Part shown: positions 2,902 to 64,000 of the stretch, piece after piece
Position numbering within the stretch: position 1 is the first letter of the stretch
Layout: each line of letters begins with the position of its first letter
NCBI GenBank assembly: GCA_964270895.1
Contig: OZ185436.1
Length of the DNA stretch: 64,000 nt
From: Podarcis filfolensis
Taxonomy: Eukaryota
Reading direction: 5' to 3' (one strand)
The notes under the pieces: model-generated
Databases searched by the model: none
Seen by the model: the letters and a program-made list of their open reading frames with translations, nothing else
What the model was told of the DNA's origin: nothing
Made by a program: the position numbers and the translations under genes

Positions 2902-2921
2902 AAATAGGAAAATTAGAAATA

Positions 2922-3161
2922 CAGTGGTACCTCAGGTTAAGTACTTAATTCGTTCTGGAGGACCGTTCTTAACCTGAAACTGTTCTTAACCTGAAGCACC
3001 ACTTTAGCTAATGGGGCCTCCTGCTGCCGCCGCGCCGCCAGAGCACAATTTCTGTTCTCATTCTGAAGCAAAGTTCTTAACCTGAGGTACTATTCCTGGG
3101 TCAGCGGAGTCTGTAACCTGAAGCATATGTAACCTGAAGTGTATGTAACCTGTGGTACCAC
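2922..3161. mobile_element. Tc1/mariner (Tigger-like) MITE, copy 1 of a tandem pair
   Basis: TA|CAGTGGTACC...GGTACCAC; same family as the copies at 20302 and 26266. Confidence 0.85.
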
Positions 3162-3172
3162 AAAAATATCTA

Positions 3173-3398
3173 CAGTGGTACTTCAGGTTAAGTACTTAAT
3201 TCATTCCGGAGGTCCGTACTTAACCTGAAACTGTTCTTAACCTGAAGCACCATTTTAGCTAATGGGGCCTCCTGCTGCTGCCGTGCCGCCGGAGCACGAT
3301 TTCTGTTCTCATCCTGAAGCAAAGTTCTTAACCCAAGGTACTATTTCTGGGTTAGCGGAGTCTGTAACCTGAAGCGTATGTAATCTGAGGTACCACTG
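3173..3398. mobile_element. Tc1/mariner (Tigger-like) MITE, copy 2 of a tandem pair
   Basis: TA|CAGTGGTAC...GGTACCACTG|TA. Confidence 0.85.
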
Positions 3399-8111: not shown

Positions 8112-21123
<13,012 letters not shown>

Positions 21124-24500: not shown

Positions 24501-27500
24501 AGATGGAATAGTGGTTGTGATCGACATCAGCAGAAAGGGAGAGGTTGTTCATCGACTGAGAGGTCATGATGATGAAATACACTCTCTGGCTTGGTGCCCT
24601 GAGCTTGGGGAGGAAGGTATATGTGGTCGACAAGATGACTTCCAAGGTATGTTCCTGTACATGGGGCAAAGGGGTAGTGTTTGTTCTTGTGATCATCACC
24701 CTGTATGTATTGGGTGCTCTAAGGGCGCCTGAAGACTATGTAGAAGATCTTTCATTCAAAAATAAAGTAGTACTGTTTAACATGATTTCATGGTACTCTT
24801 GGAAGAAGACACTCCTGTTGGAGGTGTGACGGAAGAGGCAGCTGTAACAAAAGGCTATTACTTGGCATCAGGAAGCAAAGATCAGACTATCCGTGTGTGG
24901 AGCTGCACCAGAAGCAGAGGTAAGTGTATAAAAATTTGATTTGTTTTCCTTTGGCAAGGCATTCTTTGTGCATGTTTCTCAGTTTGCTTGCTTTGTGCAT
25001 CACCATTTTGACAGTTCACAGCATAGTACTGACATGTTGTAACTGCATTTAGCATCCCTGACATGCAATGTTTTGCTTCCCTAAGCAAGTATGACAAAAC
25101 CTCTTCGGATGCCATGTAATTTCTGGCACTGTTGTCATCCAAGACTGAGTGAAACATGAAGACAGAGCAGTGCCTTGGTTGAAGTGAAGGAGACTCTTAA
25201 ATCGAAAATGCAATCCTTTGCATGTTCAGTCAGAAATAAGCATTCTATGGATTTTCTTCCTTCTAAGTGTGCAAGAAATTGAAACCTATGAAGTCTGGCC
25301 TAGCTAGTCATAAGTTTTGGTGCCTTGTACTTCAGATAATCAAGGGCCAGGAGTTAGGTTGGATTCTAAGAACTGAGGCAAGAACATTTCATAAAGTTCC
25401 TGGTTATTCATAAGGGCACTTCAAATACATGTGAAGAGTCAGCTTTTCATTTTGGAAGACAGTTGTTTCGTGCTGTTCTCTCCCTTGTCCTGATATCAGT
25501 GGAGCCTGGCAGCACTTGTGGGTAAGCATGCTGTAACCATTCCTTCTGTTTCTGCAGTGGTAATGACTCTGAAATTGCCTTTTTTGAAAAGAAGAGGTGG
25601 AGGTGTTGAAACACCTGTGAAAGAACGCCTCTGGTTAACACTACATTGGCCCCCAAGTCAGCCCACACACATCTTATCCAGCTGCTTTGGGTGAGTACTA
25701 AATGCAGTGCAACAGTAATAGAAAACTCAATGCAAGCATGGGATTTGGGAATAATTCCTTGGCGTTCTGTAGCCTCCCCGTTTCTAGAGACTTCCTCCTT
25801 TCTCGGCAGCCTGAGCCATATATAGAATGTGATGTGTGAAACTTGGTGTGATGCAGTCTCTCCCATTCTTAATGGAAGGATTTCGTGTATATTACCCTTA
25901 CCATTACCATGTCTAGTGTTTTTTTGCATGTCTTGCTGTTATTTTCTTCACAGAGGTGAGCTGCTGCAGTGGGATTTGACTCAACATGGGAAGAGGAAAT
26001 GGGAACTTTTGGGAGCTTCATCCGAAGGACAAAACCACTCCAGAATAGCGTTCAATTTGTGTTCCTTGCAAGTAGAAGCTAGGCAGCTACTTCTCTCCAT
26101 TTCAATGGACAGGGATGTAAGAACCACAAGTCTTAAAATACTCCAGAGTTTTATTGTTTTGGTGGGTTACCCTGCTAAGTTGCTGTCAGTAGCCATGAAT
26201 CTGTTCCTAGCAAGCACCTATTCTAGCATTATGCAAAAGCACACAACATCTCTCCAAAATAATTACAGTGGTACCTCTGGTTACGTACTTAATTTGTTCT
26301 GGAGGTCCGTTCTTAACCTGAAACTGTTCTTAACCTGAAGCACCACTTTAGCTAATGGGGCCTCCCGCTGCTGCTGTGCCGCCGCCGCACAATTTCTGTT
26401 CTCATCCTGAAGCAAAGTTCTTAACCCAAGGTACTATTTCTGGGTTAGTGGAGTCTGTAACCTGAAGCGTATGTAATCTGAAGCGTATGTAACCTGAGGT
26501 ACCACTGTATCCACGTATTGCAAATAACTCCGGAAGGGGAGGGTGCTGAATGAATTAATATGGCGTCTGTCAAGGGCATTTGAGGGTTAACTGTTCCCAT
26601 AATTCACCTTGACTCGCTTTCCAGCTTTATTGTCTCATTATCATTGTCTGTGGACCTCCCATGATTTGCTCCGGTCTTTGCCTTCTTCAGCCTTCAGTTG
26701 TTCACAGCTCAGCTATCAGTGCAAAAAGCTGTCTGTCTTTTGTGTTACCTGTGGTTTTGGAGATAGTTTTCCATCTTCTGAGAATTACTTTCCTTGATAA
26801 TGTCAATTTTATAGAAGCAAAAAGTGATTGAAAGTCCTGTAATCTTTTAAGTTTTCAGCCGGGAAATAATCAGACCCAGCCTGGCCTTTTTTTTCTTTTC
26901 TTTTCTTGTATTTTGTGGAGACAGGGAAATGATTTTGGTCTGCAAGTTCTTAAAATTCCATATAGGGCCACTTAGTCATCTTTGGAGCAGATATCTGCTC
27001 ATCAGCACTGCTCCCCTTTTGTAAACGGCATGCTTCTGGAGAAATGTTTTGTTAATTCCCCCCCCCCAAAAAAAACCTTTAACTCCCCCCCCCCCCAATC
27101 TCTCTCTTTAGGTGAAGTGCTGGGACCTGGCAACTTTAAATTGCTGCTGGACGTTGCCTTCTCTTGGGGGTTTTGTGTACTGTTTGGCCGTTTCCCCCGT
27201 GGATACAGGCTGCCTTGCTGTAGGAGTTGGGGATGGCATGCTTCGGGTGTGGAACACCACGTCTATCAACAATCACTATGATGTGAAAACCTTTTGGCAG
27301 GGCATTAAATCCAAGGTCACAGCTGTAAGTGTGTGCTTTGATGCTTCTCTGTTTTTTAAAAAAGTTCTTCTGATTCCGAGATTGATATTGGTAGCAACCT
27401 AAATGGGGTACGACTAATGCTTGCTGTACCAGGAATGTATGGAAGCACCTAGAGTAGCAGAGTCCAATACCTGGCAGATTTGTAATAGTAAAAATAAATA

Positions 27501-52000: not shown

Positions 52001-54104
52001 ACCAAGAAGGCCCTCTCCCATGGCTCCACACAGCATGCCTGTGAGGGTGATGGGCCTCCCCCTAAGATATCAAAACCCAGGCAGGCTTGTATGAGGAGCA
52101 GCTGCTATCCCTGTGCAAAGTGAGAGCACACTTCCAGACTCTCCAGCATAAACTCCTCACTGGGGAATGAGAAAGGAAAGTCCACAAAGAAATAGGAGAT
52201 TGGGAGTGTGTAAGTACAAAGGCCCCAGAACATTTGAGTAAATGCAGGGCCACTATGTGTACTTTTACCATGAAAAATGCCAGCTTCTTGCCATATACTT
52301 GGGGTAAAAAAATGGAAGGCATTTTTGTTTTGACAATATTTTCCAGCTGGATAAAAAAGTATCTCCTTTAGGTTTAAAAACAATAAACATTTGCCTTGAA
52401 TTGTTTTTTGTGCTGCTTGTATGGCATATTTGCAAACTACCATGAGAAGCATGTAAAAGGCAATTCGTAAATTAAAAAGTTATAATGATACTTACAAGAA
52501 ATACTTTTTCCTGATTAGGGTGATGGGCCTGCTAAAGACTTAAAGCCCGAACAATTTGGCAATAATCCTAGGTTTAAAAGTGATTTTTAGTAACATTTTG
52601 ACAAAAAACCCATCGTTCTGTGCTGGCACATTGATTTGAAACATAACCCCTTCATATTGAGATGGGATTTTTTCCTAGCTGGCAAGCAGCTCTTCCTCCT
52701 ATGTGGGAACAACCTTTCAGAGAAAAACTGATTCACACATTCCCCAACTTTGAAGACTTACGTAAGATTGAACTTGAAGTTAAACTGCCATGTGTTGATC
52801 CCAGCAGGGTATTCGCCTTTCTCATTTGTGAAGGTCAGGCCTAGCTGGATGATTTTCAGCAGATCAACATTGCATCGGAGCAACTGATACTGATAGTCTA
52901 TAGAGCTGCGAAATTCACCTATTGGTCGAACAACCACCCCAGGAAACTCTGTGTCCTAGAAAAACAAAGAGAAGTCCAACCCAAACCTTGTAAGTTCTAT
53001 TCACAGATATAACACACACCAATGCAATAAACACCACAGACTATCTCCTGAATTCTGCACTTGCCGGCTTCCTGGCATCAGCGTCACGAAAAGTTAATTA
53101 AGCATGCATAAAATAATGCCTATAGCCAACTGCAGTTTCTCTTTTTGTGGCCCTTTTCCTTCTTTGGTGAAACATCTGCCCCCCCCCCAGCCATTCTAAA
53201 ATGGGAGATAGTGAGAGAATGCCTGCAGCACTACAACTGCATAGCCACTCCTCCCCCTGGATACAGAGGCACATGGTGATTCAGATGCCCTTGGCAGCTG
53301 TTTTTCCAGCCTGTTGCAGGCACTATCTGTGCACTATCTGCAAAGTGAATCCTTCATGTGCCATTGCCCCTGAATTCAACGGAAGGAGTAGAGATACAAG
53401 GTGACTGGGAGGGACAAGGGAATGAAGGACAACAGGAATGCAACAACAACAAAAAAAGGTTTTCTTCGCCTACAATTTAAACAATTTAAATTTAAACATT
53501 ACCAAACTTAAAACCATGGAGAGACCTGGTCTGAACAAAGACATTGGATTCTTATCTCATTATACATGACAAAGCCATTTTTCACCTTCTCACCCCTTGC
53601 TTTTTCCTGTAAGACCTATTGCAGTCGTTAAGAGTCGTCAACAGGCTCATCACAGCTATCTGCCACCACCCATTCCCACCACCCTTCTGAGTAATACCCC
53701 TCCCCACCTTCTCACTATATAGAAGGATCTGGCAACTTAACCTCATTGCAAAAGGAACTTTGTACTTGCTTATAGCTTCATCCCCTACAGCCCAAACCAA
53801 TGAAGCTAGGCATTTGCTCATCTGATATCTCAATCTGCATTAAGGACACTGAAAATCCTCCTAAATTTCATCAGGTGTTATATCACATCTACCAATTAGC
53901 TGAACACACTAATTTAAGCTATAATAACTCATTTGTCTACATATAAATCCTATATTTAGAAAGCTGAATACTGGAAGACATATTTACCATTGCGATGTAG
54001 CTGTAACTAAGAACTATTTCCCGAATTTTTCTCATTTCCTCTTCTAGATTATTTGCCCATACTTCGCAGATCACCTGACTGTTTTCTGCAAGTGCCGCTG
54101 GCAT
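48934..54104 (-). CDS. CNOT8: CCR4-NOT deadenylase subunit 8 (CAF1/POP2 family, DEDD nuclease), complete spliced CDS, 292 aa
   Basis: complement(join(48934..49083,49262..49372,50566..50710,51427..51588,52762..52955,53988..54104)) = 879 nt. Starts [31 protein letters not shown], contains DTEFPG and [11 protein letters not shown], and ends [12 protein letters not shown], which is CNOT8-type rather than CNOT7-type. Confidence 0.97.
49262..49372 (-). CDS. CNOT8: CNOT8 coding exon 5
   Basis: [37 protein letters not shown]. Confidence 0.97.
50332..50531 (+). mobile_element. Penelope-like element 3' fragment, copy A
   Basis: About 98% identical over about 191 bp to 53548-53738, which carries the Penelope ORF end. 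Confidence 0.75.
50566..50710 (-). CDS. CNOT8: CNOT8 coding exon 4
   Basis: [48 protein letters not shown]. Confidence 0.97.
51427..51588 (-). CDS. CNOT8: CNOT8 coding exon 3
   Basis: [53 protein letters not shown]. Confidence 0.97.
51660..52110 (-). mobile_element. L2 LINE 3' fragment
   Basis: Reverse complement of the L2-type tail (agggccttcttggtggctcc..ttggaacgccttccc), A/T-rich tail. Confidence 0.55.
52762..52955 (-). CDS. CNOT8: CNOT8 coding exon 2
   Basis: [42 protein letters not shown]. Confidence 0.97.
53490..53738 (+). mobile_element. Penelope-like element 3' fragment, copy B
   Basis: 53498-53569 translates [23 protein letters not shown], the GLNxDxGFLSHY-type C-terminus of Penelope GIY-YIG ORFs. 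Confidence 0.75.
53988..54104 (-). CDS. CNOT8: CNOT8 first coding exon (whole exon 53988-54170 including 5' UTR)
   Basis: [39 protein letters not shown], acceptor catatttag| at 54170. Confidence 0.96.
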
Positions 54105-56899
54105 CCTGAGGGATTTGCACCACAATCACAAGAGCAGGGTGGGAGCGCCAAGATGTCAAGATAAACCACCCTAAATATGTAGGGAAAATGACAAGTGCTT
54201 ATTCCAGCAAGATATTCATTTCAGAGAAAAACAGGGAGAAAAACATCAGGGACAGGGAGTCCAATCCTATACATGGTTACTTAGAAATAAGTCACAGATG
54301 GCAGAGTTCCACTCAAGACTTCCCCTTTCTCTCCCTGCATACCCTCAAAATCAGCTCTAGGGGCTCTCCCCAACCCCCAGATCAGATTCTGAGGGGAAAC
54401 AATAGCAAAGCTGTAGCCACTGTCTGGTGAGCAAGGTTATCAGTGGTTTATTACAGTATTTTGTATCTTCCTTAAGGGTATAAACACTAAAACGATTGCA
54501 TTTTCTACATTTGTGTTTTGCTGTTTCGAAACAGGCGTTTGTGTAATTCTTATACTGACTGGAAGACAGATCCGCTTTCTCCAGCAACACCCCAGAGACT
54601 ATGCATAAGGCTTGTGCCCTGGATCCTTGTAGACTGCAGCAACTAGAGACATACAGGACATACTCCTTCAAGGCTCCATATATTGGCCACAGGATGTTCT
54701 TTTTGAGCAGGCATTGTACACAATTCTGCCACAGCATGCACATTTTCCAGTGCATCTTGGATATTACAATTTAAATAGATCCATTCCACACAATGCAGGA
54801 ATTGGGCCTTGTTGTGGCACTTACCCTTTGAAATTTCCTCCTCTTGAATATTAAACAAGTCTTCAGTAGTCTTTTCAGTGACTACTGAAGACCTTCTTTC
54901 AACAGCCTTTTTAAGTTGAGATCTTTTCCAGTCTGATTTTGTGCATATCAGAACTGTTGTTAAGATATTTTTGAAGATATTTTTGCTGTTTTGCCTCTTG
55001 TTGTTTGCTGCCCAGGTTCCTCTGGAATGAAGGATACGATATAAAATTAGTAAATAAATATGCATCTTGACCAGAGAATGTTAAGATATGCACATTCCTA
55101 AAAGACTGGTGTTTTAAAAAAAGAAATTCAAAATGCACAAGGCATGCATTGCTGCTTCTGCCTCCTGAAAAAGTCCATTGAAAATCACTCTTATTTCTTC
55201 CCATGCAAAGGCAAAAGGCAAAGAACTTGGGAGAAGAATATTTATTTTGGGTTCACAGAACAGGGTTATTCAATGTGGCCAAGTTTGTGGGTGGCACCAA
55301 TTTCTTTTACAGTAGTGAACACCAAAACAGATCACAAAGCATTTCAAAAGGATCTTTCTGAATGGAGTGAAACAGCAACATAGGAATTGGCCTCCACAGT
55401 CACTTATGAACTCACTATTAAGACCATATTCATGGAAGACAATCTTACTCAGCTACAAGTGATCGCCAAAGAAGGAGGCGGCAAATGAAGTTGTTAAGAG
55501 TAGTATGATGAACTTTGGTGCAAAAAATATCAATTTCATATATATACCAATGGAGGCTGAACTGGTAATAACTACCCAGGAAAAAAATATTTCCATTTAG
55601 AAAAAGAAAGATGAAACATAATACAGGTTTATAAAAACTAAACACAGTATAGAGAAATCAGAAATAAAAACACATTTTTCCCTCTCTTGTAATACAGTAA
55701 CAGAATGTTAAACTATGGAATTCACTACCACAAAATTGGTGACGATATTTACTTCCAGTCTCAAGATCTAGTAGTAACTTGGCTTCCTCTCTTATGGTGC
55801 TATATTTCACACTATTTTGTCTAACCTTTTGACTATGAAAACTTTAGGCTTCTCAGAATTGCTTGTTGTGAAACAAGGATTTTGTTTTAAGCCTGCTGCT
55901 CTGAGTGTTCCTAAACACAACCAAGTGAACATTCTTTTCACTATTTTATATGAATCTGCCAGAATCTTTTTCTAAACCCAAGTAACCTTCAGTAAAATTA
56001 TCTGCCCTAAAAACCATGCCATTATTCTGAACATTCTTCTTGCATTTCCTTATTTATATTTGCTTTTCAGAGTAGCAGTAACAGTACTAAAAATGCATAA
56101 AAATCAACAGGATTTTTGCCTCACAAGTTTGAGAAGAACAATCTTTGCCTTCCTACAGATGCTTCAAACTGTGCTGTTTCCAAAATATTCTCTCTATGAA
56201 ACCCAAGTTATATCTTAGATATTAAGAACTTTCATTATGTATAATCATTTTTAACCCAACAGTCTTTAAAGAAAACCTCATGTAACAATCTCAAAATTCT
56301 TAAACTATGTCCACTAGTTCCAAGTATATTATTATATTTGTTAATTACGCTTCACCACGACACTCCAGAGTGTTACATCTAAAATAGGCAATACAATACT
56401 GTACAGTACATCATTTTAATCAGACTGTTCCGCCTCACCCAAACAGCAGGTAATACTGTTTACTGATCAATCTACTTCACATTCTGCTTTCAGTCAGTTA
56501 TACAAATCCAAAAAAGCAGGATTTCCAAATTATTCCAAATCATCCCTCAAACCCCTTTAACAAGGCAAACCACCCAGACATTTCTTTGCCAGAATTAGCT
56601 TCCTATGCTCCACCCCAGAAGTTAAGGAATATCTGTATTTTCTTGCAGCCTTTGCTCTCCCTCTTTGGTTTTCTCCTTGCCCTGGAAGCTTCCACCCCTC
56701 CAAGCATCACCCGCATCCAACACCCTCCTCCATTCGTTCACCAGTACTTTTCGGCTACTGTCTCAACTCCCCCGAGCGGGAATACAGACTGGAGTAAAAA
56801 AAAATACCAATTTTCTGCTTAAATGCGAGGCCTCCTTCGATCTCCGTAACAGGGAAGGAGGCCGGGGGTTAGAAATGTAAGGAAACAAGGACGAAGAAA

Positions 56900-57860
56900 C
56901 AAATCGGCTTAATAAAGAGCACAATATTCTTACACGCAAGAGAGTCTTTTGTCGCGACGAAATCTAGACCGACCTGGACTATGTGACTTCGCAGCAGAAG
57001 CCTCTCTCGTCCCTGATCCCTTCCAACAGAGAGGGAATATTCTCTCTCACGAAAGAAGCATTTGCAGGACAACTTGCGCGCGTGTGTGTTTCTCCGCCCG
57101 CCCCCCGCGATGCAAGAAAAACCTCTCCGCGCGGAAGTTTAGGCCCTCGCTTCTACGTGCCTTGCGCGGAAGGAGGAGGAGGAAACGACGACGCCACAAA
57201 CCTCTGAGGTGCTGGAGCCCCTGCTCTGCCTTCCCCACCTTGGGAGCTACGCAAGCGAGAACCGAGGGTTTGAAAAAAACACCACCCACAACCAGGAAAT
57301 CCGGTCAGCAAACAAAGGAGCTTTCCCGCCCGAGACCCTCCAGAGGCTCCTCCCCCTCCCCGCCCTCTCGACCCCCAACCTCTCCTCGCCTGGCCTAAGG
57401 CCTAAATGCGAGCCCAACGCCTCACCAGGAGCGCGGGGAAACCGAGCGCCGGGCCGTTGCTCCTTTCCGCCGCCTTGGTCTTCCTCTGGTGGGGTCCCTT
57501 CTAGGCTACCGATTTTCCATCGCTCGATGGTTTGCTGAGCTGGGCGTCTTTTTCTCTCTATCGCTCTGTTTTTCTCCCTACACGCATGCGCTCTAAGCGA
57601 GCCTTTCTGGGGCAGGAAGCATCCGGCTTTCCGTAAGAGACGCCGGAAAGAGGAAAGAGAGTGTTCACTTTTGCACGTGAACACTGCCTGCAGCGGCTCC
57701 TCCTCCCCGCTGTGTTCCAACTGCGCCTGCGCCTGGGAGGCGTTGGGTAAACCCAATGAGCAACGCGTGTCCTGTCGAAAGGGATGGCTGAGTTTTTTGT
57801 TTTATGCGTTATGGAGCAGGACTCAACGGCGGCAGAGCCCGCCCAGAAAGGAGGAGAGGC
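56900..57860 (-). promoter_or_regulatory. CNOT8 CpG-island promoter with probable non-coding first exon ending at 57426
   Basis: CpG-rich. NRF1-type ACGCATGCGC at 57582-57591 and TGCGCCTGCGC at 57722-57732, CCAAT at 57752-57756, and a minus-strand donor CTG|gtgagg at 57426/57425. Confidence 0.7.
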
Positions 57861-58140
57861 AGCTATGAAAGCGATCGAGCTGTTTTGTTTTGATTCTGGC
57901 AAACTCTGCTTCAGCAGTTGATGCAGCAATCCGAAAAGCACCCTGGTTTGGGAATAATAATAAGCCCCCTTGAACCCCGTGCGATTCATTCCCATAAGAT
58001 TTATTCCCGAGTGAGAATGCATGCTAATGCGCCATGACAGTAATGTTAAGCACACTTGAGACCTGGTTCTGGACTTTGAAGTAAATCCATTTCAGGTCAC
58101 TGGGAGTCATTCCCAAGTAATTGCATTACAGTCTTTAACC

Positions 58141-58770
58141 TGATACGGAAGGGGGGGCATGTCTTCTTCACCTTCTTCTTCGCTACAATATATCAATTTC
58201 TTTCCAATTGTCAATGTCAAAAGGGACTAAAATCTATAAAATTCATAGAAAATCAACGTGCCAATTTGCTCAATTTCTCTAGGACTCCATCACACCTCCC
58301 CTGTCCTCCATAATCCCTCAAACAAGGTGTCAAGACCCTAATCCTGTCAAATCACTCTGCCTCCAGGAAATGCCAGTACATGGACCATTGTCTTCTCATC
58401 AGGATGTGCTTATCTGCGCATATCTCCAGCTCTGCATATTCCCCCCTCCCTCCTCCATATGTTAATCCTGTGTAACCCAACCTCTTCTTAATGTATTCAT
58501 GATGTAATCTGTGTAACCCAACCTCTCTTTAATGTATTCATGATGTAACTGGGATGTATTTTGCACTGTATTCTGGGACATGGAGGGAAGTTTCAAAAGT
58601 TTATGTCACCCCTTTCTTGCGGTTCAATCTCGCCTTGAACCTGTTGCGCAATAAACGTGGATCTTCTGCAGCTTGCTCCTGTCTCCGGCTGAGCTCATTT
58701 TCCTCCGCAGGGACTAAGTCCGACGAGCTGGGTGGCTGAGCAGCCTCGCACCCAGATTTTTACCGTAACA
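58141..58770 (+). mobile_element. 5' LTR of an endogenous retrovirus / LTR retroelement (about 630 bp)
   Basis: Imperfect terminal inverted repeat TGATACGGAA...TACCGTAACA (8/10), AATAAA at 58650-58655, a tandem duplication in U3, and a PBS 2 nt after the end. Confidence 0.8.
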
Positions 58771-58772
58771 GA

Positions 58773-58790
58773 TGGCGCCCAACGTGGGGC
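58773..58790 (+). promoter_or_regulatory. Retroviral primer-binding site, tRNA-Lys1,2 type
   Basis: TGGCGCCCAACGTGGGGC, the 18-nt Lys1,2 PBS known from betaretroviruses, some lentiviruses and foamy viruses. Confidence 0.92.
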
Positions 58791-60178
58791 TTTGCGGTTC
58801 TCCTGTGTTGCTGACCAGGGGCCCTGAAATCTTCAGCCGGCACCGGGCCATTTTGCCTGGGAAGATCCTTTGGACCCCCGGCCATCTTCCGGGCGGTAAT
58901 CAAAGCCCCAGGAGTTCAGCCGGGGAGCAAAGAGGGATCCAGCCGGCTTATTCGTCGATCCCGGGATCATCATAGAAGACACGTGAGTATAAGGAAAAGG
59001 AAAAATCCAGTGCACTGGTGGGAAGGGGGTGGAAGTCTCCTGGCAACTGAATTCTCTGCCCTCCTCTCTATCGCTCCTTCTTGCCTTTCTCTTGGTCCGG
59101 TTAGTGAGAGAGACCGTGGACCGCTGCTCGACCCGAAAGGGGGGTTCTGAGCTCTATCTCTTAACTCTTAAACCCTCCAGCCAGCCGCACCAATTGGGAG
59201 CCCGAAAGTAAGACGGAGAGAGCCGACTTGAAAGACAGCCGACTCTCCGCAACGGGCATCTCAGTTGAAAGCAAGGGGTTGGAGCTCTCTTTCCGAACTT
59301 CCCTAGCGCCCGGCAAGGGGGCAGGAAGGGGTCTGGCTTTCTGTCTCAATCCCAGCCGCACTGGTCGGTGCCACGTAACACGTGTATCGTGCGTGAGCCC
59401 GCTTCCAAAAGCAAGGGGGATTTTCGGTTCAAAACTCTATCCAGGGATCACCCGATCTGGCACCGCACGGCGCGGGCGTTCAGTAGGGCCCCTTTTCCTG
59501 AGATTGTGACGATAGGTAGGAGGTTGCCAGGAGGGATAGCCCATGAGGAATTGGGCGGGATCGGCAGAGTGGAAAGGAACCCCAGGTTATTAAATAGGAA
59601 ATAGGAAAGGAATAGAAAAAGGAACCAAGTGGGTGGAGCTCGTTAAACCGTTAGGAAGTTGCCAAGCAACAAGGAAAAGGAAAACCCTAAATAGCCCCCT
59701 GTACAAGTTACCCAAATCCTAATCAACCCCTCTCTTTCTCCCTTCTCTATCCCAGACACCCCCCCCAAAAAAAGAAAAACAACAAAAAAGCAACAGCAGC
59801 AATGCATGCATATATAAAGGGGTACCCAGTCAACCAAGCGTTGTGAGCCCTGCCAGTTTGATTAACTGGTGGTGTGTTTGAAGAGGCAAGGAAGCTCATA
59901 AAACCATGTGGGACCTTCCTACTAATTTCACTTAATGAAGCCAAAGGAAGCGGCCCAACTCCTTGCGATAACCAACTAAAGAATGAGAATACATATGTTT
60001 ACATATTGTCTGTTATGTGTGTTGTCTGTTAATACATATATGAGAATATGTATGTTTACATGTTGTCTGTTATGTGTGTTGTCTGTTCCTTCTGTCTCTG
60101 ACAGACTGCCTTTCTTAAGTGTGCATAGTTTAAACTACAAGCTTGCTTCAAAATTTAAATCTAGGGAAGCCATGCTGG
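58791..60178 (+). mobile_element. ERV internal leader region (no recognisable gag), ends at an assembly gap
   Basis: Follows the PBS. GC-rich structured start, donor AC|GTGAGT at 58982/58983, 3' splice site ending at 59755, TGTCTGT-rich repeats typical of retroviral leaders. The right boundary is uncertain. Confidence 0.6.
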
Positions 60179-60311
60179 NNNNNNNNNNNNNNNNNNNNNN
60201 NNNNNNNNNNNNNNNNNNNNNNNNNNNNNNNNNNNNNNNNNNNNNNNNNNNNNNNNNNNNNNNNNNNNNNNNNNNNNNNNNNNNNNNNNNNNNNNNNNNN
60301 NNNNNNNNNNN
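60179..60311. other. Assembly gap (133 N) between the ERV leader and the tubulin tail
   Basis: N run. Confidence 1.
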
Positions 60312-60450
60312 GAGGAAGAGGAGGATTTCGGCGAAGAGGCCGAGGAGGAAGCTTGAGGCGAGTCTGCTGGCAGTTCGGGAAACAAAACAGAAAAGTCAAT
60401 AAATCCGCACAAAAATAAAAATTGAAAAACAGAAAAAAACAAAAACAAAA
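60312..60450 (+). pseudogene. TUBB: 3' end of a class I beta-tubulin retrocopy (C-terminal tail, stop, short UTR, AATAAA, decayed A-tail)
   Basis: 60312-60356 translates EEEEDFGEEAEEEA*, identical to the TUBB (beta-I) isotype tail. AATAAA at 60398-60403, A-rich tract at 60411-60450. The 5' part is hidden in the N gap. Confidence 0.8.
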
Positions 60451-62009
60451 TGAGAATGAAGGGTGCAAATGTTTGTTATTTGAGAGAGGCTCCAAAGAGT
60501 CTTCCTCCGAGTAGCTTAAGTGAGGAGTATGATTTTAAGTTGATGGTAGATAATGTTATGTTGCAACCTTTGAGTTTGTGATTCTACATCCGTGTTCCAG
60601 TCCTTTTTCCAGTATTTTGAAATGTGCTGTGAAGAAACTAATGTTTCTGCTGCAAAAGCCTAGTTGAGCCAACTGCTCTCTCAAGCTAAAATGCAGTGTA
60701 TGTATTTCATTAAGCACATGCCTATGAAAATAGGTGTTCCTTCTAAGAAAATTGTTAATAAAAGGTAGAAGCTTTGATAGACAACAATTGTCTATCTATA
60801 GAGTCCAGTCCTGATATCAGTCTCTAAGATCAGCCAGGGTTTCCTGGCTTCTTATTGGAAAATGCCTCCCCCACTTGTTTCAGTCTCTTTCAGGTTCTCC
60901 CCCCCCCCCTTCTTACTTCTGTGCCAAATGAATTTACTCCTGAGCAAGCTTCCTTCAACAAGGGAGGGCGGCACATTCTTTGCTAAAAGTACCCGACATC
61001 TCACTTTCCTATGTATCGTTATTATTATTTTTTAAAAGTCTTAATTAGGCGTACTATTCCTATGCAAGTTCAGAAACATTATTAACTTTTGTATCCCTTT
61101 TAAATCAAATCCAGGACATCATTTCTGTAGGAACTTGCACTCTTAGTCTAAGGAAGTAAACTCTCACTCAAACTAGCTTCAAGATCTGCTAAAAGGGTTC
61201 TGTATAAAGCTGGGTACTTTTATTTTCCTCTTCCTTAGTACATGATAGGAGCATTGATTGTGCTCTCTTCCCCAGTAGTGCCTGTGTACATAAGTATGTG
61301 TGTGTCTCTTTGGTAGTACAAATCTTGCTGCGAAATCTTGCTGTGAACCCTATATTTTGGAGGGTTGGACTAGATGACCCCAGGGTCCCTTTCAACTCTC
61401 CCAATTTGTGGCTGTGTGGAAGGACATGTGTCCGCAAGCATTGGAGGGTAATTCTTAAATTCTGGTGTGGTGATGGAGTTGAAATTCAGCCTAGCTTTGC
61501 TCTTTAGTTTTAAAAGGTGAGAGGTGAAGCTGTGATGTTTTGAAGCACAACTGGTAATATCAAGCATTTGAGTGATTACAGTGTTTATCATTTTGTCTAC
61601 TATTTAAAAATCAGACTTCAAAGTCAATTCAAAGTTTAAGCACATACAAATACATATGGGCCTTGACCAATCCTGTAAATAAAGGGCAGGAAAAAATTTT
61701 TGTCTGCAAATGGTAAGGCTGAAATGTTAAAAAAAATCCTATGAATTCTGACTCTCTGGCCATTTTTTCCCATATATAAGGGCGTGGCATTGTTCCGCGA
61801 ATGACCAGAGGGAAATCACACAAAATGATAGCCCTTTCCTGTAAATAAAGGAAGGAAACATGATCCCTTAGAAAATTTCTAGCTTTGGTAAATGCTTGAA
61901 TTGCGGAGTTTCTTGTTTTGTTTTAAATCTAACCCTATTTTTAAAAATCTACTCCTTACCCTTCATTTCCTTGATTCAAATGGTAATTTAGCCAAAAGAT
62001 TCAACATTT

Positions 62010-62222
62010 TCAATAGTATAAAAGGTTTGCTGAGACATGAACTCTGCACATGCACAGAGGCTAGATCAGCTAAAAAAAGGAAAAGAAAAAGAGAGAGGAA
62101 GGAGAGGGGAGAGGAGGTTTGGAGAGCTTGGGCTGCAGGGAGAAACATCCAAATTTCCTTATGTAAAACTTGGAACCATTGAGGGAAATCACCCTTAATG
62201 TGTCCTTTGCTCCAGGGGCTAC
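62010..62222 (+). other. Candidate promoter / non-coding first exon of the next plus-strand gene (FAXDC2 expected by synteny)
   Basis: TATAAAA at 62017-62023, DR1-like TGAACTCTGCAC at about 62038, consensus donor AC|GTAAGA at 62222/62223. No FAXDC2 coding sequence was recognised. Confidence 0.2.
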
Positions 62223-62886
62223 GTAAGACAAAAGAGTTAAGTACTGGACCGTCAAAGTCAGGGGGTTGCCAAGTTTCAAATCTTAACCTGCCAAATTCTT
62301 TTCATAGGTAAATATCAAAGCATTCCCCCCCCCCTCAATGGGATGTAAATCACAGACTTTGTTTGTGTGTATTTTAGGAACAGCATTTCCTGACAGGCTT
62401 CTCACATGAAATAATTTTCCCTTTTAACAGGATATGTGAACCCCGATAACAAAGTGTTTGTCCCTTCTTTTCTCCCACAGCAACTTTCTTTCTGTTCTGT
62501 AAAACAAGTCTGAATCCCTGCTATATTAGTGACTTCCATCTCTTTGCGGCTTTGACACTTTAAGTTACAAGTAATTAAGTTACAAGTTTTCATTTATTTA
62601 TGTCTATGAAATTAATTGAAGCACAACCAAACATTGTTTGTGGAATGGTATTTGTTTACCTTTTGCCTGAGCATTTCTTATTAATTCTGTCATTTTGGCT
62701 AGTTCAAGGTACTTACACAACCTTAAATTGCCATTCATTTTCTTGGTATTAAGTCATTTCCCAGTATTTTGCTATTAACATCCTAGCCGATATTGTCACA
62801 TCAAGAAACACTCTTTTATTTTCATTGTTACTTCAGATTTCTTAAAATTGTGTGTCTTAGCATTTATTTATGGTTCCTCATAGGTC

Positions 62887-62888
<2 letters not shown>

Positions 62889-62918
<30 letters not shown>
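62889..62918. repeat. (TG)15 microsatellite
   Basis: Pure TG run. Confidence 0.95.
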
Positions 62919-62922
<4 letters not shown>

Positions 62923-64000
62923 ATTATTATTTTAACCTTGTATTTTTTTTTACAGTTCTCTTTCTCTACATATGGAGTAATTTTTTATTTAATAATATGG
63001 GAGGGAGACGATAAAAACCAAAGTGAAGGAAAGCAAACAAACTTAGCAGATAATAACAGTAATTATATGGAAATGTGATAATAATATTGAAATGAATAAA
63101 ATGCTTAATCCGCTAAGATTTTTATTATTTGCAGCTTCCCACGGAAACTGAAGGACATCCTTTTTGCCTTTCTCCCCTTCCCTTTTCTAACTCTGTCTTT
63201 TAAGTCCCCAAAACCCTGCCCCTTACAGGATATCACTTCTACAAATGTGTTACTACAGATCCAATTAAAAGCTTCGCCACCACAAGACCTGCAACAACAA
63301 CAGACACCAAAGTTTTCAAAGTGGCCACAGCTATCTCTTTCAAAGGATATAGACTGCCGGGGGAGTGGGCCTGACAAAGGGGGGAGGAGTTGAATTGCAA
63401 GGACATTTTCTCACTTTTGAACCTCAAGACTGTGCTCTGGCATTGAGAAGATACATGCGTAAAAATATCACAATTGTCTCAAGATATGCAACTGATACTT
63501 AATTAGTTTGTTTTGTATTATGTGTTATTACGTAGGAATGTTGAAATGTGTCTGACAGTGTGTTATTTCCACAAATGGGGGGGGCTATTTTTGTGGCTAT
63601 TTTTGTGTGTAATTGTTTTTATGTTTAATGTCTTATTCCTTACACCCCAGTGGAGGATTCTCATACATTTTATGCCTTTTAACAGATCAGGCTATTATGT
63701 AGTCCAATGTTTAGAATTAGATAAATTTATAACCACATTTCGTTGTTTCACCTGGCACTCTGCCAACTTCCCTAACCATTTTAAAATGTGCTAAAACTCA
63801 CTTTACCAAGGAGGAGCTTCAGGAAGGTGTATATGCTTTGGTTTAGCAGGAATAATCCCTTATAGAGTTAAATTGACTTATTTGGACAAGTGCCCCTTAA
63901 GAGTGGTTTTGCTTTAACAGATTGGTTTGAAAAGTTGAGAACCATGGGGCAAGATAAATTCAAATTGGACTCAGTTTGAATTGGGCAAGTGTATCCAGGC

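Follow-up and report, generated by a model that had tools for sequence, protein, structure and literature searches.

The visible sequence at 60312-60450 on the plus strand of the analysed DNA (one stretch of 64,000 nt, hereafter the window) most likely represents part of a processed pseudogene, truncated at its 5' end and derived from TUBB, the gene for class-I beta-tubulin. Such a retrocopy had been proposed in a preliminary description of the same DNA. The proposal is favoured by the coding tail, by the succession of UTR, AATAAA and A-run, by the uniqueness of this A-run and by the jump in base composition; a clear target-site duplication, in contrast, is not demonstrable. A start codon, tubulin domains and a promoter of its own are all lacking in the visible fragment.

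Coding tail and isotype identity

Translation of 60312-60353 (+) yields EEEEDFGEEAEEEA, which corresponds to the last 14 codons of class-I beta-tubulin and is followed directly by a TGA stop codon (60354-60356). In a search of the complete set of PDB chain sequences, with the N-run read as X, the stretch matched just three entries, all of them beta-tubulin. EEEEDFGEEAEEEA agrees in 14 of 14 positions with residues 431-444, the C-terminal end, of 6i2i_B and identical chains, entitled "Tubulin beta chain / Beta1-tubulin". Since the match reaches the last residue of this 444-residue chain, the TGA occupies the position of the tubulin stop. In the isotype table of PMC7464520, the tail of betaI/TUBB is likewise EEEEDFGEEAEEEA, and the tails of betaIIa, betaIIb, betaIII and betaIVa differ from it. 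Judged by sequence, 60312-60353 is thus the tail of class-I beta-tubulin (TUBB), as supported by both the PDB match and the review table. Earlier statements that the 45 bases after the gap encode this peptide plus TGA, and that all 14 TUBB-defining residues are matched, are hereby confirmed. The isotype-defining tail and stop that a functional beta-tubulin gene should possess are accordingly present at 60312-60356.

Glutamate (GAG or GAA codons) accounts for ten of the 14 residues, and one might suspect that GA-rich sequence of low complexity has produced the match by chance. This is hardly conceivable. Based on trinucleotide frequencies of the window itself, the 14-mer with its stop is expected by chance 1e-16 times per window, and no other stretch in all six frames of the window has at least nine acidic residues in 14 codons. 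Furthermore, the residues other than glutamate (D, F, G, A) agree as well, as does the stop, and a poly(A) signal and an A-run then follow.

Putative 3' UTR, poly(A) signals and A-rich run

Downstream of the stop codon, a 3' UTR-like stretch of 41 nt (60357-60397, +; 51% G+C, three CpGs) leads to an AATAAA hexamer at 60398-60403 (+). A second AATAAA is located at 60414-60419 (+), 57 nt from the stop and already within an A-rich run that spans 60408-60450 (+); both hexamers were read directly from the sequence. The order of stop, short UTR, AATAAA and A-run is therefore present as previously described. The UTR length given at that time, about 55 nt, is appropriate for the second hexamer but too long for the first, which lies only 41 nt from the stop.

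The A-rich run contains 30 A in 38 nt at 60412-60449, and its purest part is 60433-60450 (16 A out of 18 nt). Tandem Repeats Finder detects (AAAAAC)2.7 at 60435-60450. At least 29 A (or T) per 38 nt occur nowhere else in the 64 kb on either strand. A poly(A) tract after the signal, typical of processed pseudogenes, can thus be recognised, its interruptions being due in part to the AAAAAC repeat. That the run is not clean poly(A) (30 of 38 nt) nevertheless counts against the retrocopy reading. The initial portion, which includes the second AATAAA, probably still belongs to the UTR. Both C residues in 60433-60450 are members of one AAAAAC repeat, so a single substitution followed by slippage would suffice to produce them. 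The run as a whole, 60408-60450, probably consists of a terminal UTR portion and a poly(A) remnant after it. The preliminary description had contrasted an undecayed tail with an interrupted A-run, a conflict that largely disappears once the UTR portion with the second AATAAA and the AAAAAC repeat are considered. Exact scans of metagenome contigs, a collection that holds no vertebrate genomes, returned zero matches to a 27-mer of the UTR and to a 26-mer of the tail-coding sequence, a result of little weight.

N-run and sequence to its left

The 5' end of the tubulin fragment is hidden by an N-run of 133 nt (60179-60311). The window contains three N-runs in total (152, 129 and 133 nt). The other two, at 835-986 (152 nt) and 2773-2901 (129 nt), lack exon-like flanks; the latter abuts a SINE-like repeat, further copies of which are found at 2917-3161, 3163-3391, 20296-20518 and 26256-26505 (85-93% identical). 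Owing to their irregular lengths and to the contact of one of them with a multi-copy repeat, the N-runs look like assembly gaps of estimated size rather than masked exons. The previous claim of severe 5' truncation with at most 44 more codons consequently holds if 133 nt is the exact length, and is conditional on an estimate otherwise.

If the gap were in reality much longer than 133 nt, or if the contig starting at 60312 were mis-scaffolded, a longer tubulin copy could be concealed here, either a retrocopy or retrogene of full length or a true beta-tubulin gene. Besides the N-run lengths, this unlikely alternative can draw on the fully intact tail peptide, stop and CpGs, as expected under selection, and on the fact that assemblers often break within multi-copy genes. 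On the other hand, the left contig is AT-rich and CpG-poor up to the gap, with no tubulin, CpG island or tubulin start, and a genuine gene would need several kb within a gap estimated at 133 nt. Moreover, the only strong A-run of the window is found precisely where a poly(A) tail would be expected, and a genuine gene does not encode the tail; the left and right flanks are also alike in composition. In vertebrate beta-tubulin genes, this part of the coding sequence is located inside a single long last exon, so that a lack of introns would be expected here in either case.

The absence of visible tubulin to the left of the N-run, already remarked upon, is borne out by two approaches. No Tubulin or Tubulin_C Pfam match was obtained in nine plus-strand open stretches scanned at 58993-60177, and none of the longer plus-strand open stretches at 57000-60178 has a tubulin-like reading. 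The GTPase and Tubulin_C domains that precede the tail in a functional gene are accordingly missing from the visible sequence. Provided that the N-run really measures 133 nt, a TAG in the same frame at 60162-60164 leaves no open reading frame of note. The hexamer GCCATG, with which the left contig ends, was considered as the beginning of tubulin sequence and set aside as a post-hoc 6-mer.

A tandem duplication occurs in the AT-rich DNA left of the gap (59983-60087; period 57 nt, two 48-nt copies, 94% identical). Each 48-nt copy starts with ATGAGAAT, the 8-mer that also follows the A-run at 60450; this coincidence is not significant in a shuffling-type control. Comparison of 58000-62500 with the whole window revealed no further copy of the fragment or of either flank. 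An Rfam scan of 56000-64000 gave only a single sub-threshold chance match, and no tRNA genes were found in the window.

Base composition and probable age of the insertion

The coding tail has 58% G+C, compared with 34% in the 200 nt left of the N-run and 38% in the right flank (60451-60650). Similarly, the CpG observed/expected ratio reaches 1.0 in 60312-60410 (six CpGs in 99 nt) and is 0.2 in both flanks; across 20 kb of the window interior it amounts to 0.27. Directly after the A-run begins AT-rich unique sequence, where G+C and CpG ratio fall at once to flank values, an indirect hint that similarity to the parent locus would stop at the poly(A) site. The right flank, similar in make-up to the left one, is AT-rich host DNA. 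The fragment of about 100 nt, GC- and CpG-rich between poor flanks, thus has the appearance of foreign DNA that arrived fairly recently. Such a compositional island in CpG-depleted DNA is expected where part of an expressed gene has come in not long ago.

Intact CpGs and an unchanged tail peptide suggest that the insertion is probably young. Near-identity to the parent gene could also have caused the assembly to break inside the fragment. The intact tail, stop and CpGs might instead result from purifying selection, if the gap were underestimated and the tail belonged to a beta-tubulin retrogene that is complete and intact, or to a TUBB gene that has been relocated, beside the CNOT8 promoter region. 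We regard this as very improbable. In such a case, the lineage would possess an extra class-I tubulin gene of its own, possibly using the CNOT8 promoter region. The explanation of the A-run given above, together with the intact CpGs, argues for a young insertion rather than for selection on the tail.

Upstream LTR element

An LTR-like unit with TGTTA...TAACA ends and an AATAAA near 58651 is located at 58045-58770 (+). Two nucleotides after it lies a primer-binding site (58773-58790, +), 18 nt in length and an exact match to tRNA-Lys1,2. These features identify 58045-58790 as the 5' end of an LTR retroelement or an endogenous retrovirus. From the primer-binding site to about 59700 the sequence is GC-rich with a CpG ratio of 0.69. 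There is no copy of a second LTR within the window and no gag, pol or env Pfam domain in the open stretches after the primer-binding site; the element is therefore truncated, non-autonomous or continuing into the gap. The putative U3 contains a 41-nt tandem repeat (58463-58548, 2.1 copies, 93% matches), which may be a duplicated enhancer-like block. At 59760-59800, where G+C drops from the level of the LTR element to that of the flank, a C8 run is followed by the A-rich, C-interrupted tract AAAAAAAGAAAAACAACAAAAAAGCAACAGCAGCAA. The LTR element could end with this tract, or the tract could be the tail of a different retroposed sequence.

The element bears on the question of how the tubulin fragment arrived. 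Instead of LINE machinery, cDNA or DNA might have been captured at double-strand-break repair, a small piece from the end of the parental gene might have been duplicated at the DNA level, or the LTR element might have brought along or generated the fragment by a retroviral template switch to co-packaged TUBB mRNA. These routes, quite unlikely when taken together, are compatible with the position of an LTR and exact primer-binding site 1.4 kb upstream on the same strand, with the second LTR absent from the window, and with the fairly intact CpGs of the element's internal part. They would also suit the lack of a demonstrable target-site duplication. Nevertheless, about 380 nt of AT-rich, CpG-poor sequence resembling the right flank (59800-60178) lie between the GC-rich part of the LTR element and the gap, and the A-run is not followed by an LTR. 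The ending in AATAAA and an A-run is the trace expected of poly(A)-primed copying, and an end at a poly(A) site would be surprising for a copy made at the DNA level. Insertion of the LTR element into a longer tubulin retrocopy was likewise considered and rejected: upstream of the LTR there is no tubulin-like reading, and a second LTR is not found.

Proposed origin of the fragment

According to the retrocopy reading, TUBB mRNA would have been reverse-transcribed by a LINE-1-type enzyme, with priming on the poly(A) tail where the chromosome was nicked. Copying would have passed through the UTR and reached the last part of the coding sequence before an early stop or fall-off of the enzyme. A short 5'-truncated fragment, dead on arrival, would be the outcome. 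The N-run probably covers the actual 5' junction. A candidate target-site duplication, the 9-nt AATGAGAAT at 59982 and 60449, was discarded, as matches of at least this length arise in 20% of random 500-nt stretches of the window.

Genomic neighbourhood

The first coding exon of CNOT8 (MPAAL...) lies on the minus strand at about 53985-54107. This single exon scores 68 bits against CNOT8 and 45 bits against CNOT7 in the PDB comparison, which supports the earlier assignment of CNOT8 as neighbour. About 3 kb upstream of this exon, a CpG-rich region at 57000-57800 (observed/expected 0.85) presumably contains the CNOT8 promoter and a 5' exon. The tubulin fragment, situated on the plus strand and thus opposite to CNOT8, is 6.2 kb from the first coding exon and about 2.6 kb beyond the putative promoter region.

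Relation to known retrocopies and implications

Processed pseudogenes of beta-tubulin in human are textbook examples (Lee, Lewis, Wilde & Cowan 1983, Cell 33:477, as cited in PMC2275610). As is proposed for the fragment described here, they are reverse-transcribed mRNA copies located away from their parent, ending with UTR, poly(A) signal and A-tract. Here, in contrast, only 45 nt of coding sequence are visible, the 5' junction is under the N-run, a direct repeat is not demonstrable and the host is apparently no mammal. The human copies of the 1983 study are reportedly near full-length, with demonstrable flanking direct repeats. A closer parallel in structure is provided by 5'-truncated LINE-1-mediated insertions, where poly(A)-primed copying stops early and retains nothing of the template but its 3' end, as proposed above.

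Among lizards, about 404 retrocopies, 187 of which are retropseudogenes, have been counted in Anolis carolinensis (PMC3136929; also tabulated in PMC5470649). Retrocopies were linked to LINE-1 content in that work, those of Anolis being about ten times rarer than human ones (PMC3136929). These products of RNA-based duplication show that copies such as the one proposed here are to be expected, though more rarely than in human. With 14 visible codons, the fragment is probably too short for a protein-similarity screen of the Anolis type, and is thus probably uncatalogued.

The fragment is an ordinary genomic fossil, a very small addition to a known class, and has little importance beyond annotation. 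It may explain the assembly break at this point. As a second copy of the TUBB 3' end, it is relevant to mapping of tubulin reads and to the design of TUBB probes in this genome. The two AATAAA hexamers, lying on the plus strand upstream of CNOT8, could in principle act as terminators of read-through transcripts. Finally, the retroposition was probably recent, which suggests that some poly(A)-priming reverse transcriptase has been active in this lineage.
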